Source: Paraphysomonas bandaiensis
Lineage: Eukaryota > Protista > Chrysophyceae
Reading direction: 5' to 3'
Assembly (NCBI GenBank): GCA_965644295.1
Contig: CBFFRP010000493.1
Span: forward strand, 1-16,752
DNA length: 16,752 bases
Shown here one piece after another: positions 1 to 10,885 of the stretch. The translations under genes were made by a program, and so were the position numbers. The notes under the pieces were generated by a model, which was not told the DNA's origin, ran no database searches, and saw only the letters and a program-made list of their open reading frames with translations. Every line of letters starts with the position of its first letter. The stretch's first letter is position 1.

Positions 1-1
1 G

Positions 2-238
2 CCTCCGACTGTGCTTTATCAGGACAACAAGTCCTCCATCTCCTTATCTGAGAATGGTACATCCAGATCAGGCCGGACTCAGCACATCAGAGTGCGATAC
101 CATTACCTACAGGAGCGCATCCTGAACGGTGACATTCGGCTCTGCTACAAGCCCACCAAGGAAATGATTGCCGACATTTTGACTAAGCCCCTTGGAGGCC
201 AGAACTTCACCGACCTGAGGCAAAACCTGCTCCAGTGA
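2..238 (+). CDS. pol: Copia pol C-terminus, RNase H domain (partial, open to the left)
   Basis: LYQDNKSSISL...RTQHIRVRYHYLQERI...KPTKEMIADILTKPL matches the copia RNase HI-like end (DN.SAI...R.KHI.VRYH...M.AD.LTKPL). Confidence 0.93.
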   Translation, partial: PPTVLYQDNKSSISLSENGTSRSGRTQHIRVRYHYLQERILNGDIRLCYKPTKEMIADILTKPLGGQNFTDLRQNLLQ

Positions 239-329
239 AGCCTCAGCTGCCTCCAAGATTCCCATACGTCTTACGGTAAACTGTCATTCCAATGTCGCAT
301 GATGCACACTCAGTACACATAACTCCATT

Positions 330-338
330 GCAGGGGTG
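330..338 (+). other. Polypurine tract (plus-strand primer) of element A
   Basis: GCAGGGGTG directly abuts the LTR start TGTTAC at 339. Confidence 0.75.
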
Positions 339-696
339 TGTTACACTATTTTTGTAGTTAGTCATCAGGAGTAGCAGATACTTGCACGTACTCCCCATGT
401 CTGTATAACACCTGTATACATACAGAATGCAAGAGATACGTCACTATCATTTATTGCCTCTCATGAAATCGTCAGTAGCATTCATAGCCACTTATAGTAT
501 AATCGTCAGTAGCATCCATAGCCACCCAAGTGCATTGCCTCTTGTGAATCAATCATCATATAGAGTCACTTTTCTCTATTGACCCGATTAGTGGTAATAA
601 CAACCATTTAATTACACTTGCACTTTAGACTTGCAACATTGTACAGCATATCCTTGAGAGGAGAGCTTTTTGTGCTACATCAGTCTTTGTCCAACA
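339..696 (+). repeat. LTR copy 1 (3' LTR of element A), 358 bp
   Basis: Starts TGTT and ends AACA (4-bp terminal inverted repeat). Direct repeat of 702-1059 with no differences found by eye. Confidence 0.95.
467..525 (+). repeat. 25-bp duplication within LTR U3 (467-491 and 501-525; also 830-854 and 864-888 in LTR copy 2)
   Basis: AATCGTCAGTAGCATTCATAGCCAC vs AATCGTCAGTAGCATCCATAGCCAC, 1 mismatch. Confidence 0.85.
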
Positions 697-701
697 TTTG
701 T
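697..701. other. 5-bp spacer TTTGT between the two LTRs, probable shared target-site duplication
   Basis: Junction reads ...GTCCAACA TTTGT TGTTACAC...; 5 bp is the typical copia TSD length. Confidence 0.65.
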
Positions 702-1059
702 TGTTACACTATTTTTGTAGTTAGTCATCAGGAGTAGCAGATACTTGCACGTACTCCCCATGTCTGTATAACACCTGTATACATACAGAATGCAAGAGAT
801 ACGTCACTATCATTTATTGCCTCTCATGAAATCGTCAGTAGCATTCATAGCCACTTATAGTATAATCGTCAGTAGCATCCATAGCCACCCAAGTGCATTG
901 CCTCTTGTGAATCAATCATCATATAGAGTCACTTTTCTCTATTGACCCGATTAGTGGTAATAACAACCATTTAATTACACTTGCACTTTAGACTTGCAAC
1001 ATTGTACAGCATATCCTTGAGAGGAGAGCTTTTTGTGCTACATCAGTCTTTGTCCAACA
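702..1059 (+). repeat. LTR copy 2 (5' LTR of element B), 358 bp
   Basis: TGTT...AACA termini; same sequence as 339-696. Confidence 0.95.
929..944 (+). promoter_or_regulatory. Putative initiator (TCACTTT, +1 near A931) and self-primer sequence CTTTTCTCTATTG (932-944; also 569-581 in LTR copy 1)
   Basis: A YCAYTYY-type Inr motif overlaps the start of a 13-mer exactly complementary to 1060-1072. The TSS itself is inferred, not observed. Confidence 0.55.
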
Positions 1060-1072
1060 CAATAGAGAAAAG
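1060..1072 (+). other. Primer-binding site, self-complementary type (CAATAGAGAAAAG)
   Basis: Lies immediately 3' of the LTR end, lacks the TGG expected for tRNA-CCA priming, and is the perfect reverse complement of 932-944. Confidence 0.8.
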
Positions 1073-1073
1073 C

Positions 1074-2615
1074 ATGGACGTCGGAAAGCTGACTTACACT
1101 CCGAATAACCTATCCACATGGCGCAGACAATTCTTGACATACGCCATCACTCATTACGGAGATGCTGGGACCATGCTCGATACAGGCAGCATGCCAGAGT
1201 ACATCGAGAACGAGTTCCCAATGCCGGAAGCGTTCCCGAAGCATAAAGACATGGAGTTTGAGATCATCAAGACCAAATACCTCGCACACACCAAGAAGGT
1301 TGAGCGTTTTGAAGAGTCTACCACTAGGCTCTACGGGGACATAATTCTACATATGTCCGAGGCCTCCATCACTCAAATGGAGAGCCACATCGATGAATAC
1401 GCAGAAGTCATCGAAAGCCGCTGCCCCCTCACGCTTTGGAAGCTGGTGATCAAGTCACATACCTTTGCTGGCAAGGAGGCCTCATTCTTAGAGAAGGAGA
1501 AGGCAAAGTCGAGACTCCAAGCGCTGAAGCAGGGATCTCAGAGTCTAGCCGAACATCACGCACGATTCGATCAGAAGCTCCAGATCTGTGAAGACATGCA
1601 GATCGATCCAGAGCCGAAGTGGGTGATCTATACTTATTTGCTCAGCCTGAATGTCGCGACCTTTGGCCAAATAGTGACCGAAATGCTGACCGAGATGGAC
1701 ACGGATCGGTTCCCGGCAACGCTGGAGGATGCGAAGCGCAGGATCGACCGTTTCTCTCAGTCATCGCGCCAAGTAGGACTACACGTTCGAAAGACTCCAC
1801 GCGATCAAGACTCTGCATTCGCCCATCATGCCGCCGACCACGACGACCAGAAGCAGATCCAATGTGCCTTTTGCGATAAGACAGGCCACTCTGCCCAAGA
1901 ATGTTTTTCACTGAAGAGATGGAGAGCAAAGAACCCCAATACGAATCCACCTCGTCAGAACAAGGGAATACTCAAGAAGCCCGCGCACACTAAGAAGAAA
2001 TTTCAGAGTCAGCGCAGCCAGAGCGAGAAGTCAGTGTCATTCGCTCAGTCGGACTCCGAGTGGGTATCTCTTTGTTCCACTGTCGGTGTAGATTCTGGAG
2101 ACATAGACGACTACATCATCGACAGTGGCGCCAATGTCTCAGTTGTGAAATCTACCTCAGGGCTGTCCGACCTCAAGACCATAAGTCCTATTTCAGTCAA
2201 TGGGATCGGGTCTGGTATTACCTCGAAATGCGTCGGCACGCATCGACTATTCGGACAATGCTACTTTGCACCCGAGTGTAGGATCAACATACTGTCACAA
2301 CACCGACTTGCCGAGAGATACAGCATTCAGTTTGACAGTGAGGTCGGGGATTTCTTTACATTGACTCCCAAGGACCAGAGCTCGGACCTACCCATTTTGA
2401 CCTTCGCGCCTGGTCCAGACCGATTGTATCACCTATGTCATGACCTTGCTCAGGTGTACGGGGCATCTTTTCGACATCGCGCCCCGCGAGATCCGAGCCA
2501 GCCCAGGACGCAGGAAGAGATCAATCGAGCCCGCGGAGTCCTTGAGTTGCATGCTGGACTCAACCACCCAGGGGACGACGCTTTGTCCAAACTCCAAGCA
2601 CTTCTTAACTGTTAA
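1074..2615 (+). CDS. gag-pol: Copia Gag-protease polyprotein, truncated in the pre-integrase region (513 aa from ATG 1074)
   Basis: Gag-like LKQGSQSLAEHHARF; CCHC knuckle CAFCDKTGHSAQEC (1863-1904); aspartic protease IIDSGANVS (D at 2121); GAG-pre-integrase LHAGLNHPG (~2547-2570). The last few codons probably read into flanking DNA. Confidence 0.9.
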   Translation: MDVGKLTYTPNNLSTWRRQFLTYAITHYGDAGTMLDTGSMPEYIENEFPMPEAFPKHKDMEFEIIKTKYLAHTKKVERFEESTTRLYGDIILHMSEASITQMESHIDEYAEVIESRCPLTLWKLVIKSHTFAGKEASFLEKEKAKSRLQALKQGSQSLAEHHARFDQKLQICEDMQIDPEPKWVIYTYLLSLNVATFGQIVTEMLTEMDTDRFPATLEDAKRRIDRFSQSSRQVGLHVRKTPRDQDSAFAHHAADHDDQKQIQCAFCDKTGHSAQECFSLKRWRAKNPNTNPPRQNKGILKKPAHTKKKFQSQRSQSEKSVSFAQSDSEWVSLCSTVGVDSGDIDDYIIDSGANVSVVKSTSGLSDLKTISPISVNGIGSGITSKCVGTHRLFGQCYFAPECRINILSQHRLAERYSIQFDSEVGDFFTLTPKDQSSDLPILTFAPGPDRLYHLCHDLAQVYGASFRHRAPRDPSQPRTQEEINRARGVLELHAGLNHPGDDALSKLQALLNC

Positions 2616-3934: not shown

Positions 3935-4332
3935 TCAGGTTTCTTGTAACTTACAACTAACTGATTACGAGTAAGCGCTAATTGATACCATGCATTGCTG
4001 TAAGTCTACATTAAAATACAGTCCCTGAGTCAATATACGAGTCAATATGACCCACATCATCATGAGCATCTTCTGCCTACCTGGCCAACTAGCCCAGAAG
4101 ACTTACTTCACTCCATACTGCTGTTGGTGTCTCCACACAGCTGTCATAATATTCTGCTGTCTGTGGAAATATGAAGATTCTGCAAAAAAATCGACGTTTT
4201 TTCGTTATTTCTGAAAATATATTCATCAAAAAACAACATGCATGACTTTTAGACTGCTGTGACATCCAGCAGTACATACATGCATACTCCGCAGATACAG
4301 CAGCACATACATACATACTGTACATACATACC

Positions 4333-4472
4333 TGTATGTATGTATGTATGTATGTATGTATGTACGTACGTATGTATGTATGTATGTATGTATGTATGTA
4401 TGTATGTATGTATGTATGTATGTATGTATGTATGTATGTACGTATGTATGTATGTATGTATGTATGTACGTA
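4333..4472. repeat. (TATG)n / (TGTA)n tetranucleotide microsatellite, about 35 units with a few TACG variants
   Basis: Directly visible. Preceded by a short opposite-orientation (CATA)n tract at ~4306-4331. Confidence 0.97.
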
Positions 4473-4738
4473 CACTGTTCTGTTATGTGTGGAATTTGCA
4501 TCTGGATTTTTGTGTACATGTTTGTACAGCAGGATGTATCGTTATACGGCTATGTTGTGCAGTGTGCGTGTGGGGTGTTTGCTGGTAGATTGAGAGGTTT
4601 GTCTCTGCGTTCAGAATCTAACCGAAGCTTTGAATATCTGTGTTTGTGGTGTGTGTTTGTACCAATCAAACGGTTCGGCGCCGTTCGCTGTGACATCTAT
4701 TGAGTTGTATCTCTGAGTCTGTTGTTTGTTCTAGAAGG

Positions 4739-5554
4739 ATGACGTGGCCTGTTAAGGGCGCTGCTGTGATGCTCAACAACGACCTGCCTGCTCCTCGAAT
4801 GACAGTTATGGATGCCTTCAACAAGACCTCCTCTAGTGTTAAGGAACCTGAAGTTGTGTTCGGCACTGGTTCTCGTCCTCCTCTCATGTCCCCAACATCA
4901 TCTCCTGGTCCAGGTGCTTATCACATTAAAACAACTATGAGGAAGACGATGGACTCAACGATTCAGTCTCCGAAAGAGTTTTCTATTCGGAGCAGGCAAA
5001 ATTTTGGTGATCCTAATCTTAAAGCGCTCTCGAAGTCCACTGCCAATGAACCTGGTCCCGGTCAGTACAAAATCGCTGATAAGTTTCTGACTGGTCGTGA
5101 TGAACCCAAATATAGTTTTCCAAAAAGTCGACCGCCAACGAGTAAGGCACTGCTTTCCCCTGGACCGGGTCAGTATCAACTGCCGCCTAGCATGGGCAAA
5201 CAACCGCTCTCCACTAAACAAAAGGCACAAGATGCCCCTTTTCCACAAGCAGGCCGCCCGACTTTGATCTCCCCTGGGACTACAGAGATTGGACCAGGAG
5301 AGTATGGGGTGCCCCCAGCAGCCTGTGAACCGCAGGTTGACTCGCGTAAACCCACTTGTTCGTCCGTTAAGTTCGGTACGGGATACCAGAAGAACATGAA
5401 GAACAATCAAAAGCTGGATCTTAGTGAGCCTTCACCTGGCCCAGGATCTTACAAACTTCCAGGAGGTGTTGCCACCAGGAGTTCGGGTACGCCATACAGA
5501 AGCTCGCCTGCTGCAAGCCTCAGTGGAAGAAATGCCTTTGGTAGCCCATGGTGA
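4739..5554 (+). CDS. ODF3/SHIPPO (PGP-repeat) family ciliary microtubule-associated protein, 271 aa
   Basis: Repeated motifs SPGPGAY, EPGPGQY, SPGPGQY, IGPGEY and SPGPGSY with typical spacers (PKYSF, PxFS, VKFGT). First ATG at 4739, just after a possible splice acceptor (TTGTTCTAG). Confidence 0.88.
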   Translation: MTWPVKGAAVMLNNDLPAPRMTVMDAFNKTSSSVKEPEVVFGTGSRPPLMSPTSSPGPGAYHIKTTMRKTMDSTIQSPKEFSIRSRQNFGDPNLKALSKSTANEPGPGQYKIADKFLTGRDEPKYSFPKSRPPTSKALLSPGPGQYQLPPSMGKQPLSTKQKAQDAPFPQAGRPTLISPGTTEIGPGEYGVPPAACEPQVDSRKPTCSSVKFGTGYQKNMKNNQKLDLSEPSPGPGSYKLPGGVATRSSGTPYRSSPAASLSGRNAFGSPW

Positions 5555-7466: not shown

Positions 7467-7959
7467 ATCAGATCATCAGACAGAGTGAACAATGAGAGTG
7501 ACAGTGACGGTGACAGTGACGGCCTCAGGACAGAGATGAGAACTGAAGATATGGGCATATACAGACACAGCAGTACGTGTATATGTATGTATGTGTGTGC
7601 CGAGACATGCAGGCTGTACATACAGCAGTGGCAACATGCAGTAGATAATACAGAAGAATACAGAACGGTATTCCTCTGATTTGAAATGAAACTAACTAAC
7701 GACTGTTTCGGCTGCTGTGTAGACAGGCCGTATTCCATGGTATTCCTGAGCTGTATTTGGGTGTATAGATGTGGAGGCAGTGTGTGTGTAGGTATATATA
7801 GTCTGTAGTGCATGTATACGCACCATATGCAGAGTGTTCCACATACATGTATGCGGTATACGAACACGCACCTCCCTCTGTATACACACATACATATCAG
7901 TCACTGTCAGCACATACACATACCGTCACTAGTACATACCGTCACTGGTGGTGAGGGTG
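7467..7959. promoter_or_regulatory. Probable bidirectional promoter between divergent C2/EF-hand and kinesin genes
   Basis: ~490 bp between head-to-head ATGs. CCGTCACT occurs twice on the sense strand upstream of each gene. Confidence 0.5.
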
Positions 7960-10570
7960 ATGGTGGATTCATCTGAGAAGAAGAGATCACCCGATGAGGT
8001 GATTCGAGTGATGGTGAGGGTGCGGCCGCCCCTCTCGAGAGAGATGAGTGTCAACATCAGCTCATGTATAACGGTCCCGTCCCCCTCCAGCCTGCTGCTC
8101 GTGAGTGATAAGCACCATGTAAAGTGCTCGTATGATCGAGTGTTCAGTGAGCTCAGCGATCAGAGTGACGTCTTCACAGAAGTGAAGCCGCTTCTTGAGG
8201 ACGTACTGTCCGGATATAACGGCTGTGTGTTCGCTTATGGACAGACCTCTGCGGGCAAAACACACACGATGATCGGGCCTGAGGGGGGGCAGATGGGGCA
8301 GACGGGACAGGGACACATGAGAGAGGAGTGGGGAGTTCTTCCGAGAGCTGCGGAGTTTCTGTTCAGCAGTTTAGAGGAGTCCTCTCACACCGCTTCTGTG
8401 TCCGGCGGCTCCTTCTCATACTCCGCTAAGGCTTCTTTTCTGCAGATATATAACGAACGAATTATCGACTTGCTGCGTGTGTCTGATTCGGATTATGTCT
8501 CACATCGCAGCAGAGGACGACAGGAAGAGGACCTTCGAATCAGAGAGATACCCGGTCGAGGTGGTGCAGGTCCCTGTGAAGTGTATGTTACTGGTCTGAG
8601 TGAATTCAGAGTGCAGACTGCTGAAGATGTGCTGAGGATATTAGCTGTTGGTAGTCATAATCGTGCAACGCGTAGCACCAACTACAATGCAACATCCTCC
8701 CGCAGCCATGCCATTCTGCAGCTTTCATTTGAGATTGAAAAAAGCGAGGGCGGGCAAACAATAATATACAAATCCAAACTGAGTCTGGTGGACCTCGCTG
8801 GTAGTGAGAAGATGTTAGCTATATCTGAGGGTAGTGATTCGGCTCCAGCACATTTAAAGGAGTTGACCTCTATCAACCAGAGTCTTTCTAGCCTTGGGAA
8901 TGTCATCGCTGCACTTGCCTCCAAGCGTCGGTCGCACATCCCATATAGGGACTCTAAGCTGACTCGACTGTTGCAGGATTCTCTTGGGGGTAACACTCGA
9001 ACAATTCTAATTAGCTGTGTGGCTCCAACTTCTCTTCACGCTTCCGAGAGTATCAGTACCTTGCAGTTTGCTGATCGAGCGAAATGTGTGATGGTCAAAA
9101 CTAAAGCTAATCTGGTAATAGATGACAAGGCATTGCTACAAAACGCTCAGGCAGAGATAGCGAGACTGAAGTTGCTTTTAAAGCAGGCGCTTCGTAAACT
9201 AGAGAGTGTAACTGGAAATGGGGGCGGAGAGGGTGACCTGAGATTGGAGGATGGAGAAACTGCAGATGAAATGGACCGGGTTCTGAAAGAAAACAGACAG
9301 TTGAGAAAAGAGAATACAGCCCTGATAAAGGAGCTGCGAGGAATTAGGAATGGCAAGGCGTGGAAAAGTAGGCGCATACAAGGCACACCGGTAAGTAGAA
9401 GGGGAGGAGGTAGTAGTCAGGGAGGGGCGAGGCGGAAGGTCAAACCTGAGTGGTCCACAAGTCTTGTGGATGACGAGGTTTACAAGGAGACAGCTGCAAC
9501 CAGGTTCGGAGCTGCTGTTGTATTTGAGTTTTAGTAAATATTACGTAGGAAACAGGTCAGGCGGTTGGAAAGAGGAAATGTAACGCGCCAGTCTCGAACA
9601 TCGCCTGTGGTATCAGAAGGGCCGCCCCATGGTGAGGGAGCTGGTACTGTAAATTAGCGTGTCATTATTTTTATATAATCACTTACAGATTCTGGTTCTC
9701 TACCTTCTCTCGATAGTGCACGAAGACAGGAGCAAGTCAAGACTGGGTCCCGATCCTCCCATCAATATAGAATACGAAATGCACTTGGATATGGGGCCGC
9801 AGCCTGCGAGAGTCCCGCCCCAACTAAAAAACAGGCGTCAGGCCCGGCACTTGGATCTCCTACTAAGCCGATAGAAGACATACGCCGCAGCTACTTCACT
9901 ATAAACGGAACAGATATATCTGACGAAGAAGGGTCTCTTGATGTGGACGGCGACCTAGATTTGGATCTTCAGGGATTGCGAGATAAACTGAGACGTGCAC
10001 AAGATAGTGCTCAGATGAAGGCCTTGGAGCAGCGACTGGCTTCCGCATCAAGATCTGTCAATTCGCAACTTGAGGCGGATGAGGCATCTCTTCAAAGCAT
10101 ACAACAGAGCCGATTGGAGCTCGAGAGGCAGCTAGAGGAAATGCGACGGGCTCAGGAGGCAGAAGACGAGCAACAAATACAAGGTTTGTATATGATATTG
10201 CGTGTACAGTGTTAACTGGAACCCAACAGAGAGACATAAAGTGGACGAGCTAGAAAGGGAGCAACAAAAGCAGCAGGTCTCGACATCTCCCGCTGATAAC
10301 GGAGGTACAGAGAATGCATCTCTGCCTGTTCATAAGCCACGATCTAAGGCTGAAGTGCGCAATCAGCACCCTCCTGCTAACCTTACCTATTCCAAAGAAG
10401 ATACCGGCCGGACAATAGAAATGTATGTGTACCGTTACAATGCATGGGAACCCATTGAGTTACTAGACTTTGAGACCTCTAACCAACTCCATAAGTGTCG
10501 ACACCCCGACAGAACCGAGAAATGGCTTGACCTAAAGAAGAAACCTATACGGTCGGTGCCAACGCCCTAA
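7960..10570 (+). CDS. Kinesin with N-terminal motor, coiled coils and a C-terminal Tudor-like domain; 4 exons (7960-9503, 9549-9631, 9689-10183, 10230-10570), about 820 aa
   Basis: VRVRPP, P-loop GQTSAGKT, switch I NATSSRSH, switch II DLAGSE and HIPYRDSKLTRLLQDSLGG. Three short GT-AG introns (45, 57, 46 bp) join the downstream ORFs in frame with no stops. Confidence 0.9.
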
Positions 10571-10795
10571 CTGTACGAACAGTCATTGCGAAATTAGATT
10601 TTTGTTCCTTTGTACGTATATCGTCGTCGAAAGTTTTCATATTTACTACTGCTTGGTGTGATTATATTACAACGTATAGAACTGTTGAACTCTGCTTAAA
10701 GTTGGATAGTTAAAAGATATGATTTTAAGTCTTTTAATTCAGGATAGTGTTATGAACTAGGGTATACTTAAGCATGCGGTTAGTGTTAGAGTTAT

Positions 10796-10871
10796 CCTTA
10801 TCTATTCCAAGAAAGATACCAGCCGGACAATATAAGTATATGTGTACCGTTACAATGCATGGGAACCTATT
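10796..10871 (+). pseudogene. 76-bp diverged duplicate of kinesin last-exon segment 10381-10456
   Basis: Ungapped alignment with 68/76 identities. The copy has an in-frame TAA (ATA GAA to ATA TAA). Confidence 0.9.
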
Positions 10872-10885
10872 TAGGGTTAGGGTTA
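10871..10885 (+). repeat. Short interstitial telomere-like tract (TTAGGG)2 TTA; degenerate tract TTAGTG TTAGAG TTA at 10780-10794
   Basis: TTAGGGTTAGGGTTA is directly visible, and the two tracts flank the duplicated exon fragment. Confidence 0.6.

Follow-up and report, generated by a model that had tools for sequence, protein, structure and literature searches.

The stretch of DNA analysed here, contig CBFFRP010000493.1 (16,752 nucleotides, hereafter the window), carries near its start part of a Ty1/copia-type long terminal repeat (LTR) retrotransposon, which most probably primes reverse transcription with its own RNA in a manner resembling that of the yeast element Tf1. The 13 nucleotides that directly follow the 5' LTR, where the primer-binding site (PBS) of such an element is expected (1060-1072, CAATAGAGAAAAG), are the exact reverse complement, in 13 out of 13 positions, of a site inside the LTR (932-944, CTTTTCTCTATTG, referred to below as the arm). 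This perfect complement had been noted in a preliminary description made from the window alone, which proposed that this Copia lineage self-primes, and the proposal is supported by the present analysis. The complementarity, its position at the edge of the LTR, the covariation of its two sides both across lineages and within a single family, and the absence of a match among the tRNAs compared are all observed directly; pairing at the same place recurs in 13 lineages, and the arm coincides with a match to a known transcription initiator (INR) motif.

The course of events would be as follows. Transcription would start at the initiator within the LTR, at about A931, and the first 13-14 nucleotides of the RNA (932-944) would fold back over the repeat (R) and unique 5' (U5) regions to pair with 1060-1072. 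The RNase H of the element would then cut after G944, and the freed 3'-OH, lying opposite C1060, would be extended through U5 to yield minus-strand strong-stop DNA. Later in the cycle, plus-strand synthesis would copy the primer, and the PBS would in this way be rewritten from the LTR arm in each round, which would keep the arm and the PBS perfectly complementary while letting both of them drift together.

Within the window, the pairing of 13 nucleotides cannot be extended on either side, as A1059 lies opposite A945 and C1073 opposite A931. The first base past the LTR, C1060, is paired with G944, and extension from G944 would therefore copy U5. The earlier claims that the pairing halts at the LTR boundary with the polarity needed for strong-stop synthesis, and that the 5' LTR spans 702-1059, were thus borne out. 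A match of this kind had been reckoned improbable, at roughly 5e-6 without correction; after correction for the composition of the LTR, the probability of an anchored 13-mer is 2.2e-5, which leaves that judgement in place. Not one of 20,000 shuffles of the LTR reached 13 nucleotides, the maximum being 11, and the 4,380 mock anchors placed within the complete element gave LTR complements of 10 nucleotides at most. The idea that the two sites form a chance inverted repeat has nothing in its favour other than the AT-richness of some of the arms; with these figures for the window alone, and with the recurrence of the pairing at the same anchor in 13 lineages, it was rejected and retains practically no credence.

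The recurrence is best seen in the relatives of the element. A protein search with the pol open reading frame (ORF) returned two metagenomic relatives, R79 and R62, with 79% and 62% pol identity, respectively. Both retain a pairing of 13-15 nucleotides that abuts the LTR end, their LTRs can be aligned with that of the window, and the sequence GTCAC before the arm is common to all three. The letters of the arm differ among the three elements and those of the PBS differ in step with them: the arm CTTTTCTCTATTG of the window is answered by the PBS CAATAGAGAAAAG, the arm ACTTTTCTATTCTTG of R79 by CAAGAATAGAAAAGT, and the arm TTTTATTCACTTG of R62 by CAAGTGAATAAAA. The 37 nucleotides after the arm are identical in R79 and not in R62. 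This block stands out in an alignment in which the LTRs of the window and R79 are otherwise only about 69% alike overall; to judge from its predicted hairpin and its AATAA (958-962), it may act as an R or U5-IR-like stem-loop or as a poly(A) signal. Furthermore, the same genome contains C319, an old copy that has been rearranged and has an LTR 94% identical to that of the window; this copy has kept the arm and the first 10 nucleotides of the PBS, up to its breakpoint.

At least five further Copia families are present in the same genome (F22, F24, F25, F30 and F43, together the F group), with 59-76% pol identity among themselves and about 33% to the element of the window. In four of these five families, the 13-15 nucleotides past the 5' LTR (at offset 0) perfectly complement an internal LTR site, with letters that are specific to the family. 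The pairing in F25 spans 15 nucleotides and shows one mismatch in the first copy, while it is perfect in six further copies. The comparison was extended to the 5' ends of 17 additional F-group insertions, of which three were left out, namely a rearranged locus and a locus with a shifted offset, neither of which included the LTR end, and L062, which has the LTR end and the PBS but in which the upstream LTR differs and the arm lies outside the piece. All seven F30 copies with a locatable LTR end are perfect, and so is a second copy of F22. With RNAalifold, 13 non-identical F-group sequences covering R, U5 and the PBS yielded a closing helix of 16 bp, in which four pairs have changed on both sides while one-sided changes are absent; the sole internal break is found in the hybrid copy described below. 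The compensatory covariation between PBS and arm that the preliminary description had suggested looking for in related families is therefore present, in the form of these four two-sided pairs.

Two other properties of the F group can be recorded here. The LTRs of all five families end in CG...CG (CGTAGAG...CTCTNCG) rather than TG...CA and are flanked by clean 5-bp target-site duplications. Moreover, in the F-group alignment, an invariant AGAGA (columns 44-48) pairs with UCUCU (columns 169-173) just before the LTR end, 3 nucleotides from the PBS, and forms a second predicted stem beside the primer helix; both sides of this stem are invariant, hence it shows no covariation.

Beyond these families, five distant elements with 30-38% identity to the query, one from the Ectocarpus fasciculatus assembly and four of metagenomic origin, display pairings of 13-16 nucleotides whose right arm abuts the LTR end just upstream of gag. 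This brings the total to 13 lineages with 13-16 nucleotides of pairing at the LTR end, the letters being different in each of them, and relatives that keep the PBS without LTR complementarity, which would speak against self-priming, were not found among them. The end of U5 is defined by the start of the minus strand; pairing from exactly that base in 13 lineages, with the 3' end of the LTR arm opposite it, therefore corresponds to the geometry of a primer on its PBS.

Covariation is also visible within a single young family. F25 comprises two variants, one with the arm ...TTTCC... and the PBS ...GGAAA..., the other with the arm ...TTTTC... and the PBS ...GAAAA..., and each of them is perfect in three separate insertions. 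A hybrid F25 copy (L025+L054, G000:C263:417161-423700) carries the CC variant in the arms of both of its LTRs and a PBS that pairs with the TC variant, which leaves one C·A mismatch. This copy seems to preserve the trace of a natural exchange between two variant RNAs packaged together, in which strong-stop DNA primed on one of them would have been transferred to the other, as expected from the strand-transfer scheme of Tf1 and retroviruses (PMC7175516). The rewriting of the PBS from the arm would explain the lack of one-sided intermediates, the two perfect F25 alleles and the hybrid.

The exchange between variant RNAs seen in the hybrid would also suit a modified form of self-priming, where the primer is not folded back but is supplied in trans by the 5' end of the co-packaged second RNA, or from the other copy of the arm in the 3' R. 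The arm is indeed present in the 3' LTR as well (569-581), and a contig from a poly(A)-selected library, discussed below, stops 4 nucleotides past it. On the other hand, minimum free energy (MFE) folds favour the intramolecular helix, the present data leaving cis and trans undistinguished, and a primer derived from the 3' end would require the trimming of extra bases and of the tail. A primer from either of these sources is unlikely.

With regard to tRNAs, the preliminary description had stated that a PBS initiated by TGG is missing, and no TGG is in fact found at the LTR boundary, the sole TGG nearby being inside ATGGAC at the start of gag. In the 62.5-Mb genome, 12 occurrences of the 13-mer were counted, nine of them being arms or PBSs of the window's own family; at the three remaining sites ARAGORN finds no tRNA. 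From 63 tRNA matches, 20 were retrieved, which gave 14 distinct nuclear tRNAs that were compared, after addition of CCA, with eight PBSs. The best complement among them is 6 nucleotides, and none reaches 5 nucleotides with the PBS of the window. A host tRNA matching the PBS, which had been named as a finding that would contradict self-priming, was thus not detected in this set. Since tRNA-Met or half-tRNAs are used by most Copia elements (PMC6317226), and the test covered 14 distinct tRNAs only, a host tRNA, a tRNA half or another small RNA might still be thought to act as primer, the match to the LTR being incidental. However, the boundary lacks TGG, the 13-mer lies outside tRNA genes, and the PBSs vary by lineage and always follow their own LTR, an argument from covariation that is independent of the tRNA set. 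With 14 distinct tRNAs compared, priming by a host tRNA was rejected on these grounds, and an external primer of any of these kinds is very improbable.

The position of the arm relative to the presumed start of transcription was examined with reference to oomycetes, the best-studied stramenopiles, whose initiator has the consensus YCAYTYY and usually directs transcription from its A (PMC3599244). The TCACTTT to which the preliminary description had pointed occupies 929-935, and its A, at 931, directly precedes the arm. R79, R62, L081 and L082 share the full YCAYTYY motif, the A of which is placed between -2 and 0 with respect to the arm, and 12 of the 13 lineages have a CA at -2 to +1 from the start of the arm. 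As far as motifs can tell, this fits an arm that constitutes the 5' end of the RNA and begins at an initiator of the stramenopile type. In MFE folds of RNA begun at the arm, the 5' end pairs with the PBS in all eight lineages that were folded.

These folds also bear on the possibility that the duplex is a structure of the 5' leader, which closes R-U5 at the gag AUG and takes part in packaging, dimerisation or translation control, while something else serves as primer. Such a structure would account for two findings, namely that a closing helix with inner stems is predicted for every lineage and that in several of them the PBS touches or overlaps the start codon of gag. Nevertheless, in all lineages the right arm starts with the base that directly follows the LTR, and a structural stem would have no reason to respect the start of the minus strand. 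Nor is there any other candidate PBS or tRNA match, with 14 distinct tRNAs tested, and two perfect alleles in one young family with no one-sided intermediates fit the copying of a primer better than slow compensatory selection. A role restricted to the leader is therefore unlikely.

Public sequencing runs that contain the element are all marine and include three from the host organism and several metatranscriptomes. In runs X1-X3, labelled 'RNA?', depth is higher at the pol end and in the unique 3' (U3) region than in gag, which is RNA-like, but junctions between LTR and flank are present as well. A contig of 1757 nucleotides from X5, a poly(A)-selected metatranscriptome, extends from pol into the LTR as far as 585, 4 nucleotides past the arm copy at 569-581. 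Its end fits a transcript 3' end (an R/U5 border) a little further downstream, since contigs of low coverage tend to end before the tail is reached.

Several points weigh against self-priming. If the poly(A) site truly lay at about 948 (585 in the first LTR copy), the primer would be followed by only 4 nucleotides of R, which would not suffice for strand transfer; a poly(A) site further downstream is therefore required by the model. All 20 runs take the form of Logan contigs, which are unable to show RNA ends, and one contig from an RNA library spans U3-R-U5, that is, the whole 5' LTR, together with host flank; read-through transcripts or DNA are therefore present in those libraries. In addition, the tRNA set of 14 distinct sequences is partial, and the AT-richness of several arms makes chance inverted repeats somewhat easier in the distant elements. 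Finally, the start site, the cleavage and the use of the primer are deduced from sequence data.

The assignment of the element to Copia, made in the preliminary description, is upheld by its reverse transcriptase (RT). The copia-type RT domain RVT_2 (PF07727) is detected at 1e-22 both in P0001, the polyprotein of a full-length element on L058, a Tara metagenome scaffold, and in the pol of another copy in the same genome, at G000:C668, where it lies upstream of the same pol end within the same ORF. In P0001, RVT_2 occupies residues 973-1208 of 1454, in the last third of the polyprotein, with about 500 residues without a domain match ahead of the RT. The Pfam domain rve was not detected in P0001; it does precede RVT_2 in the Ectocarpus relative P0004, which is 38% identical over 98% of the pol query. 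Other traits of Ty1/copia elements are also present, namely TGTT...AACA termini, the 5-bp target-site duplication TTTGT and the polypurine tract CAGGGGTG before the 3' LTR, a tract also found ahead of the 3' LTR in R79, R62 and the F-group families F22, F24 and F30. Judged by these sequence features, the organisation of the element is that of Copia.

The copy in the window is not intact (Table 1). It consists of a pol end and an LTR (1-696), TTTGT, and a second LTR with gag up to 2595. Window positions 1-393 are identical to 6178-6570 of L058, which include the end of the 1454-residue polyprotein, and 697-2595 match L058 1731-3629 at 99.8%. The ORF that begins with gag, for which a weak Retrotrans_gag match was obtained, is broken off in the middle at 2595/2596, where L058 and contigs of X1, X2 and X4 go on with TGGACAATGGCGG... 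and the window with unrelated AT-rich sequence. The copy in the window is thus permuted and truncated; its 5' LTR, its PBS and the beginning of its gag are undamaged and show no difference from the complete element.

Table 1. Parts of the Copia element in the window (positions and strands are those of the window)
Feature	Position	Strand	Remarks
C-terminal end of Copia pol ORF	2..238	+	Stop codon at 236-238; belongs to the element copy upstream in the contig; identical to the end of P0001 on L058
Polypurine tract CAGGGGTG	331..338	+	Adjoins the LTR start
LTR copy 1, in the role of 3' LTR	339..696	+	Arm copy at 569-581; 100% identical to 702-1059
TTTGT, 5-bp target-site duplication	697..701	.	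Sits between the two LTR copies
5' LTR, 358 bp, TGTT...AACA	702..1059	+	Identical copy at 339-696
Initiator-like TCACTTT	929..935	+	A931 is the presumed transcription start; exact match to oomycete INR YCAYTYY
LTR arm, putative self-primer (first 13-14 nt of the transcript)	932..944	+	Perfect complement of 1060-1072; covaries with the PBS in relatives
37-nt block directly after the primer	947..983	+	Identical in R79; predicted hairpin and AATAA
Predicted primer-binding site, complementary to the element's own LTR	1060..1072	+	13/13 nt
gag ORF leading into the polyprotein	1074..2595	+	ATG at 1074-1076, one base past the PBS; breaks off at 2595

Two identical LTRs parted only by TTTGT, with the pol end before them and gag after them (339-1059), form an unusual junction. 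The insertion on L058 is a normal one, in which host flank and TTTGT are followed by the element with its two LTRs and then by TTTGT and host flank again, and the public runs agree with it. In the X1, X2 and X4 contigs, L058 and C437, the first TTTGT is preceded by the host flank ...CAGCTTTGG, and the TTTGT after the 3' LTR is followed by ACTAGTATGAG. With ordinary host flanks on both sides in the public runs and in L058 and C437, the junction in the window is therefore either a tandem duplication of the element together with its target-site duplication or an assembly loop.

Other copies show irregular arrangements of their own. At G000:C668 (L013 7934-8629, minus strand), a pol end is followed by a single LTR and then by a PBS and gag, that is, two element bodies on one LTR, as in a tandem or 1-LTR junction, and the upstream body has no 5' LTR within 9.7 kb. 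In L014 (G000:C437), at about 3466 and at the same insertion site as in L058, a gag of 446 amino acids is in frame with the RVT_2 of another Copia family; the match of this fused RVT_2 is much stronger (3e-67), and neither protease nor integrase lies between gag and RVT_2. Either the element in L014 is itself chimeric or the chimera arose in assembly.

The remainder of the window includes two host genes, one for a SHIPPO (sperm-tail PG-rich) repeat protein (4700-5554) and one for a kinesin motor protein (7948-9534), which together suggest a flagellated stramenopile host. The best named relatives of the kinesin, none of them more than 58% identical, are from brown algae, chrysophytes, Ochromonadaceae and oomycetes, with no diatoms among them, and on this protein evidence the host is not evidently a diatom. 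A (GTAT)n / (GTAC) microsatellite of about 200 bp is located at 4309-4508, and an 82-nt direct repeat occurs at 10378-10459 and 10793-10874, its two copies being 88% identical and 415 bp apart.

As to what self-priming in these elements means, they would escape host defences aimed at PBSs of the tRNA type, as the role described for 3'-tRNA fragments would suggest (PMC7472051). Pipelines for LTR annotation in which a tRNA PBS is mandatory will overlook the clade or assign it wrongly. The elements are young, with identical LTRs, and are present in RNA libraries, which makes the model testable. Experimental proof of self-priming exists for Tf1 only, while outside the Tf1/sushi group it consists of in-silico predictions, one of which concerns a Copia lineage of plants. 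A second Copia clade, from a distant eukaryotic supergroup, is now added with unusually clean natural covariation and, in one young family, with allelic arm/PBS pairs and a hybrid, suggesting that tRNA-independent priming arose or spread repeatedly.

Among known systems, self-priming is established for Tf1 and has been proposed for the Tf1/sushi group of Ty3/gypsy chromoviruses. Like the element of the window, for which the RNA start is presumed, Tf1 and Tf2 of S. pombe and other Tf1/sushi elements have no tRNA PBS and carry past their 5' LTR a PBS that complements the start of their own RNA. The primer of Tf1 comprises the 11 nucleotides at the start of the transcript, and RNase H cuts between bases 11 and 12 (PMC7175516). 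Tf1 depends on a stem-loop between primer and PBS, and such a stem-loop is predicted in the element of the window as well. In contrast to Tf1, this element belongs to another superfamily, as shown by its RVT_2, its pairing is longer (13-16 nucleotides in its clade), its PBS abuts or overlaps the gag AUG, and it is known here from sequence alone. It is not a member of the Tf1/sushi clade, which is marked by RVT_1, the order RT-RNase H-integrase and a chromodomain, as its own RT is of the RVT_2 type and lies in the C-terminal third of the polyprotein.

Other elements that lack a conventional PBS differ in other ways. The fungal GalEa elements are likewise Copia elements without a tRNA PBS and with a conserved structure at the PBS position. 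Their Conserved Hairpin Site is a local palindrome and hairpin with no complement in the LTR, and those who described it consider the Tf1 model inapplicable (PMC5445492). The hairpin-site model, with its palindromic site of 9 bp, does not fit the element of the window in turn, as the site there is non-palindromic and has its complement in the LTR. Drosophila copia, Ty5, Osser and Bianca, which are primed by half-tRNAs, also have no PBS of the TGG type; their PBSs match internal parts of tRNA-Met or tRNA-Ile, whereas that of the window has no match among the tRNAs compared and covaries with the LTR. For the dictyostelid element Skipper, also without a TGG PBS, unconventional priming has been proposed (PMC5006619), and it possesses a polypyrimidine stretch and no LTR-complementary region.

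With regard to novelty, the preliminary description mentioned a similar complementarity noted in silico in diatom CoDi elements, which was not borne out, as the CoDi paper mentions neither a primer-binding site nor tRNA nor self-priming. Full-text literature searches combining self-priming with diatom, stramenopile or Ectocarpus returned nothing relevant. The claim of novelty stands insofar as no report on stramenopile Copia or CoDi elements was found, and was overstated for Copia as a whole, as self-priming had already been predicted in silico for the plant Ty1/copia lineage TAR, which includes Houba and Osr-1 (Neumann et al. 2019, PMC6317226; Capy 2005 cited there). TAR is thus also a member of the Copia superfamily with predicted self-priming instead of a tRNA PBS. 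Its hosts are green plants, whereas the clade of the window is found in stramenopiles and aquatic metagenomes; the two have been compared by description, and their origin may be common or separate.

A more far-reaching and tentative proposal is that a deep stramenopile Copia clade might have exchanged tRNA priming for self-priming independently of both Tf1/sushi and TAR. Its two branches, with about 33% pol identity, would extend over brown algae and marine and freshwater metagenomes, and they would share a primer tied to an INR-type start and a PBS fused to the gag start codon, the duplex perhaps also switching the RNA between translation and reverse transcription. In comparison with the systems above, the proposed mechanism is a known one in a new clade, with a stramenopile Copia element probably joining the self-primed LTR elements.

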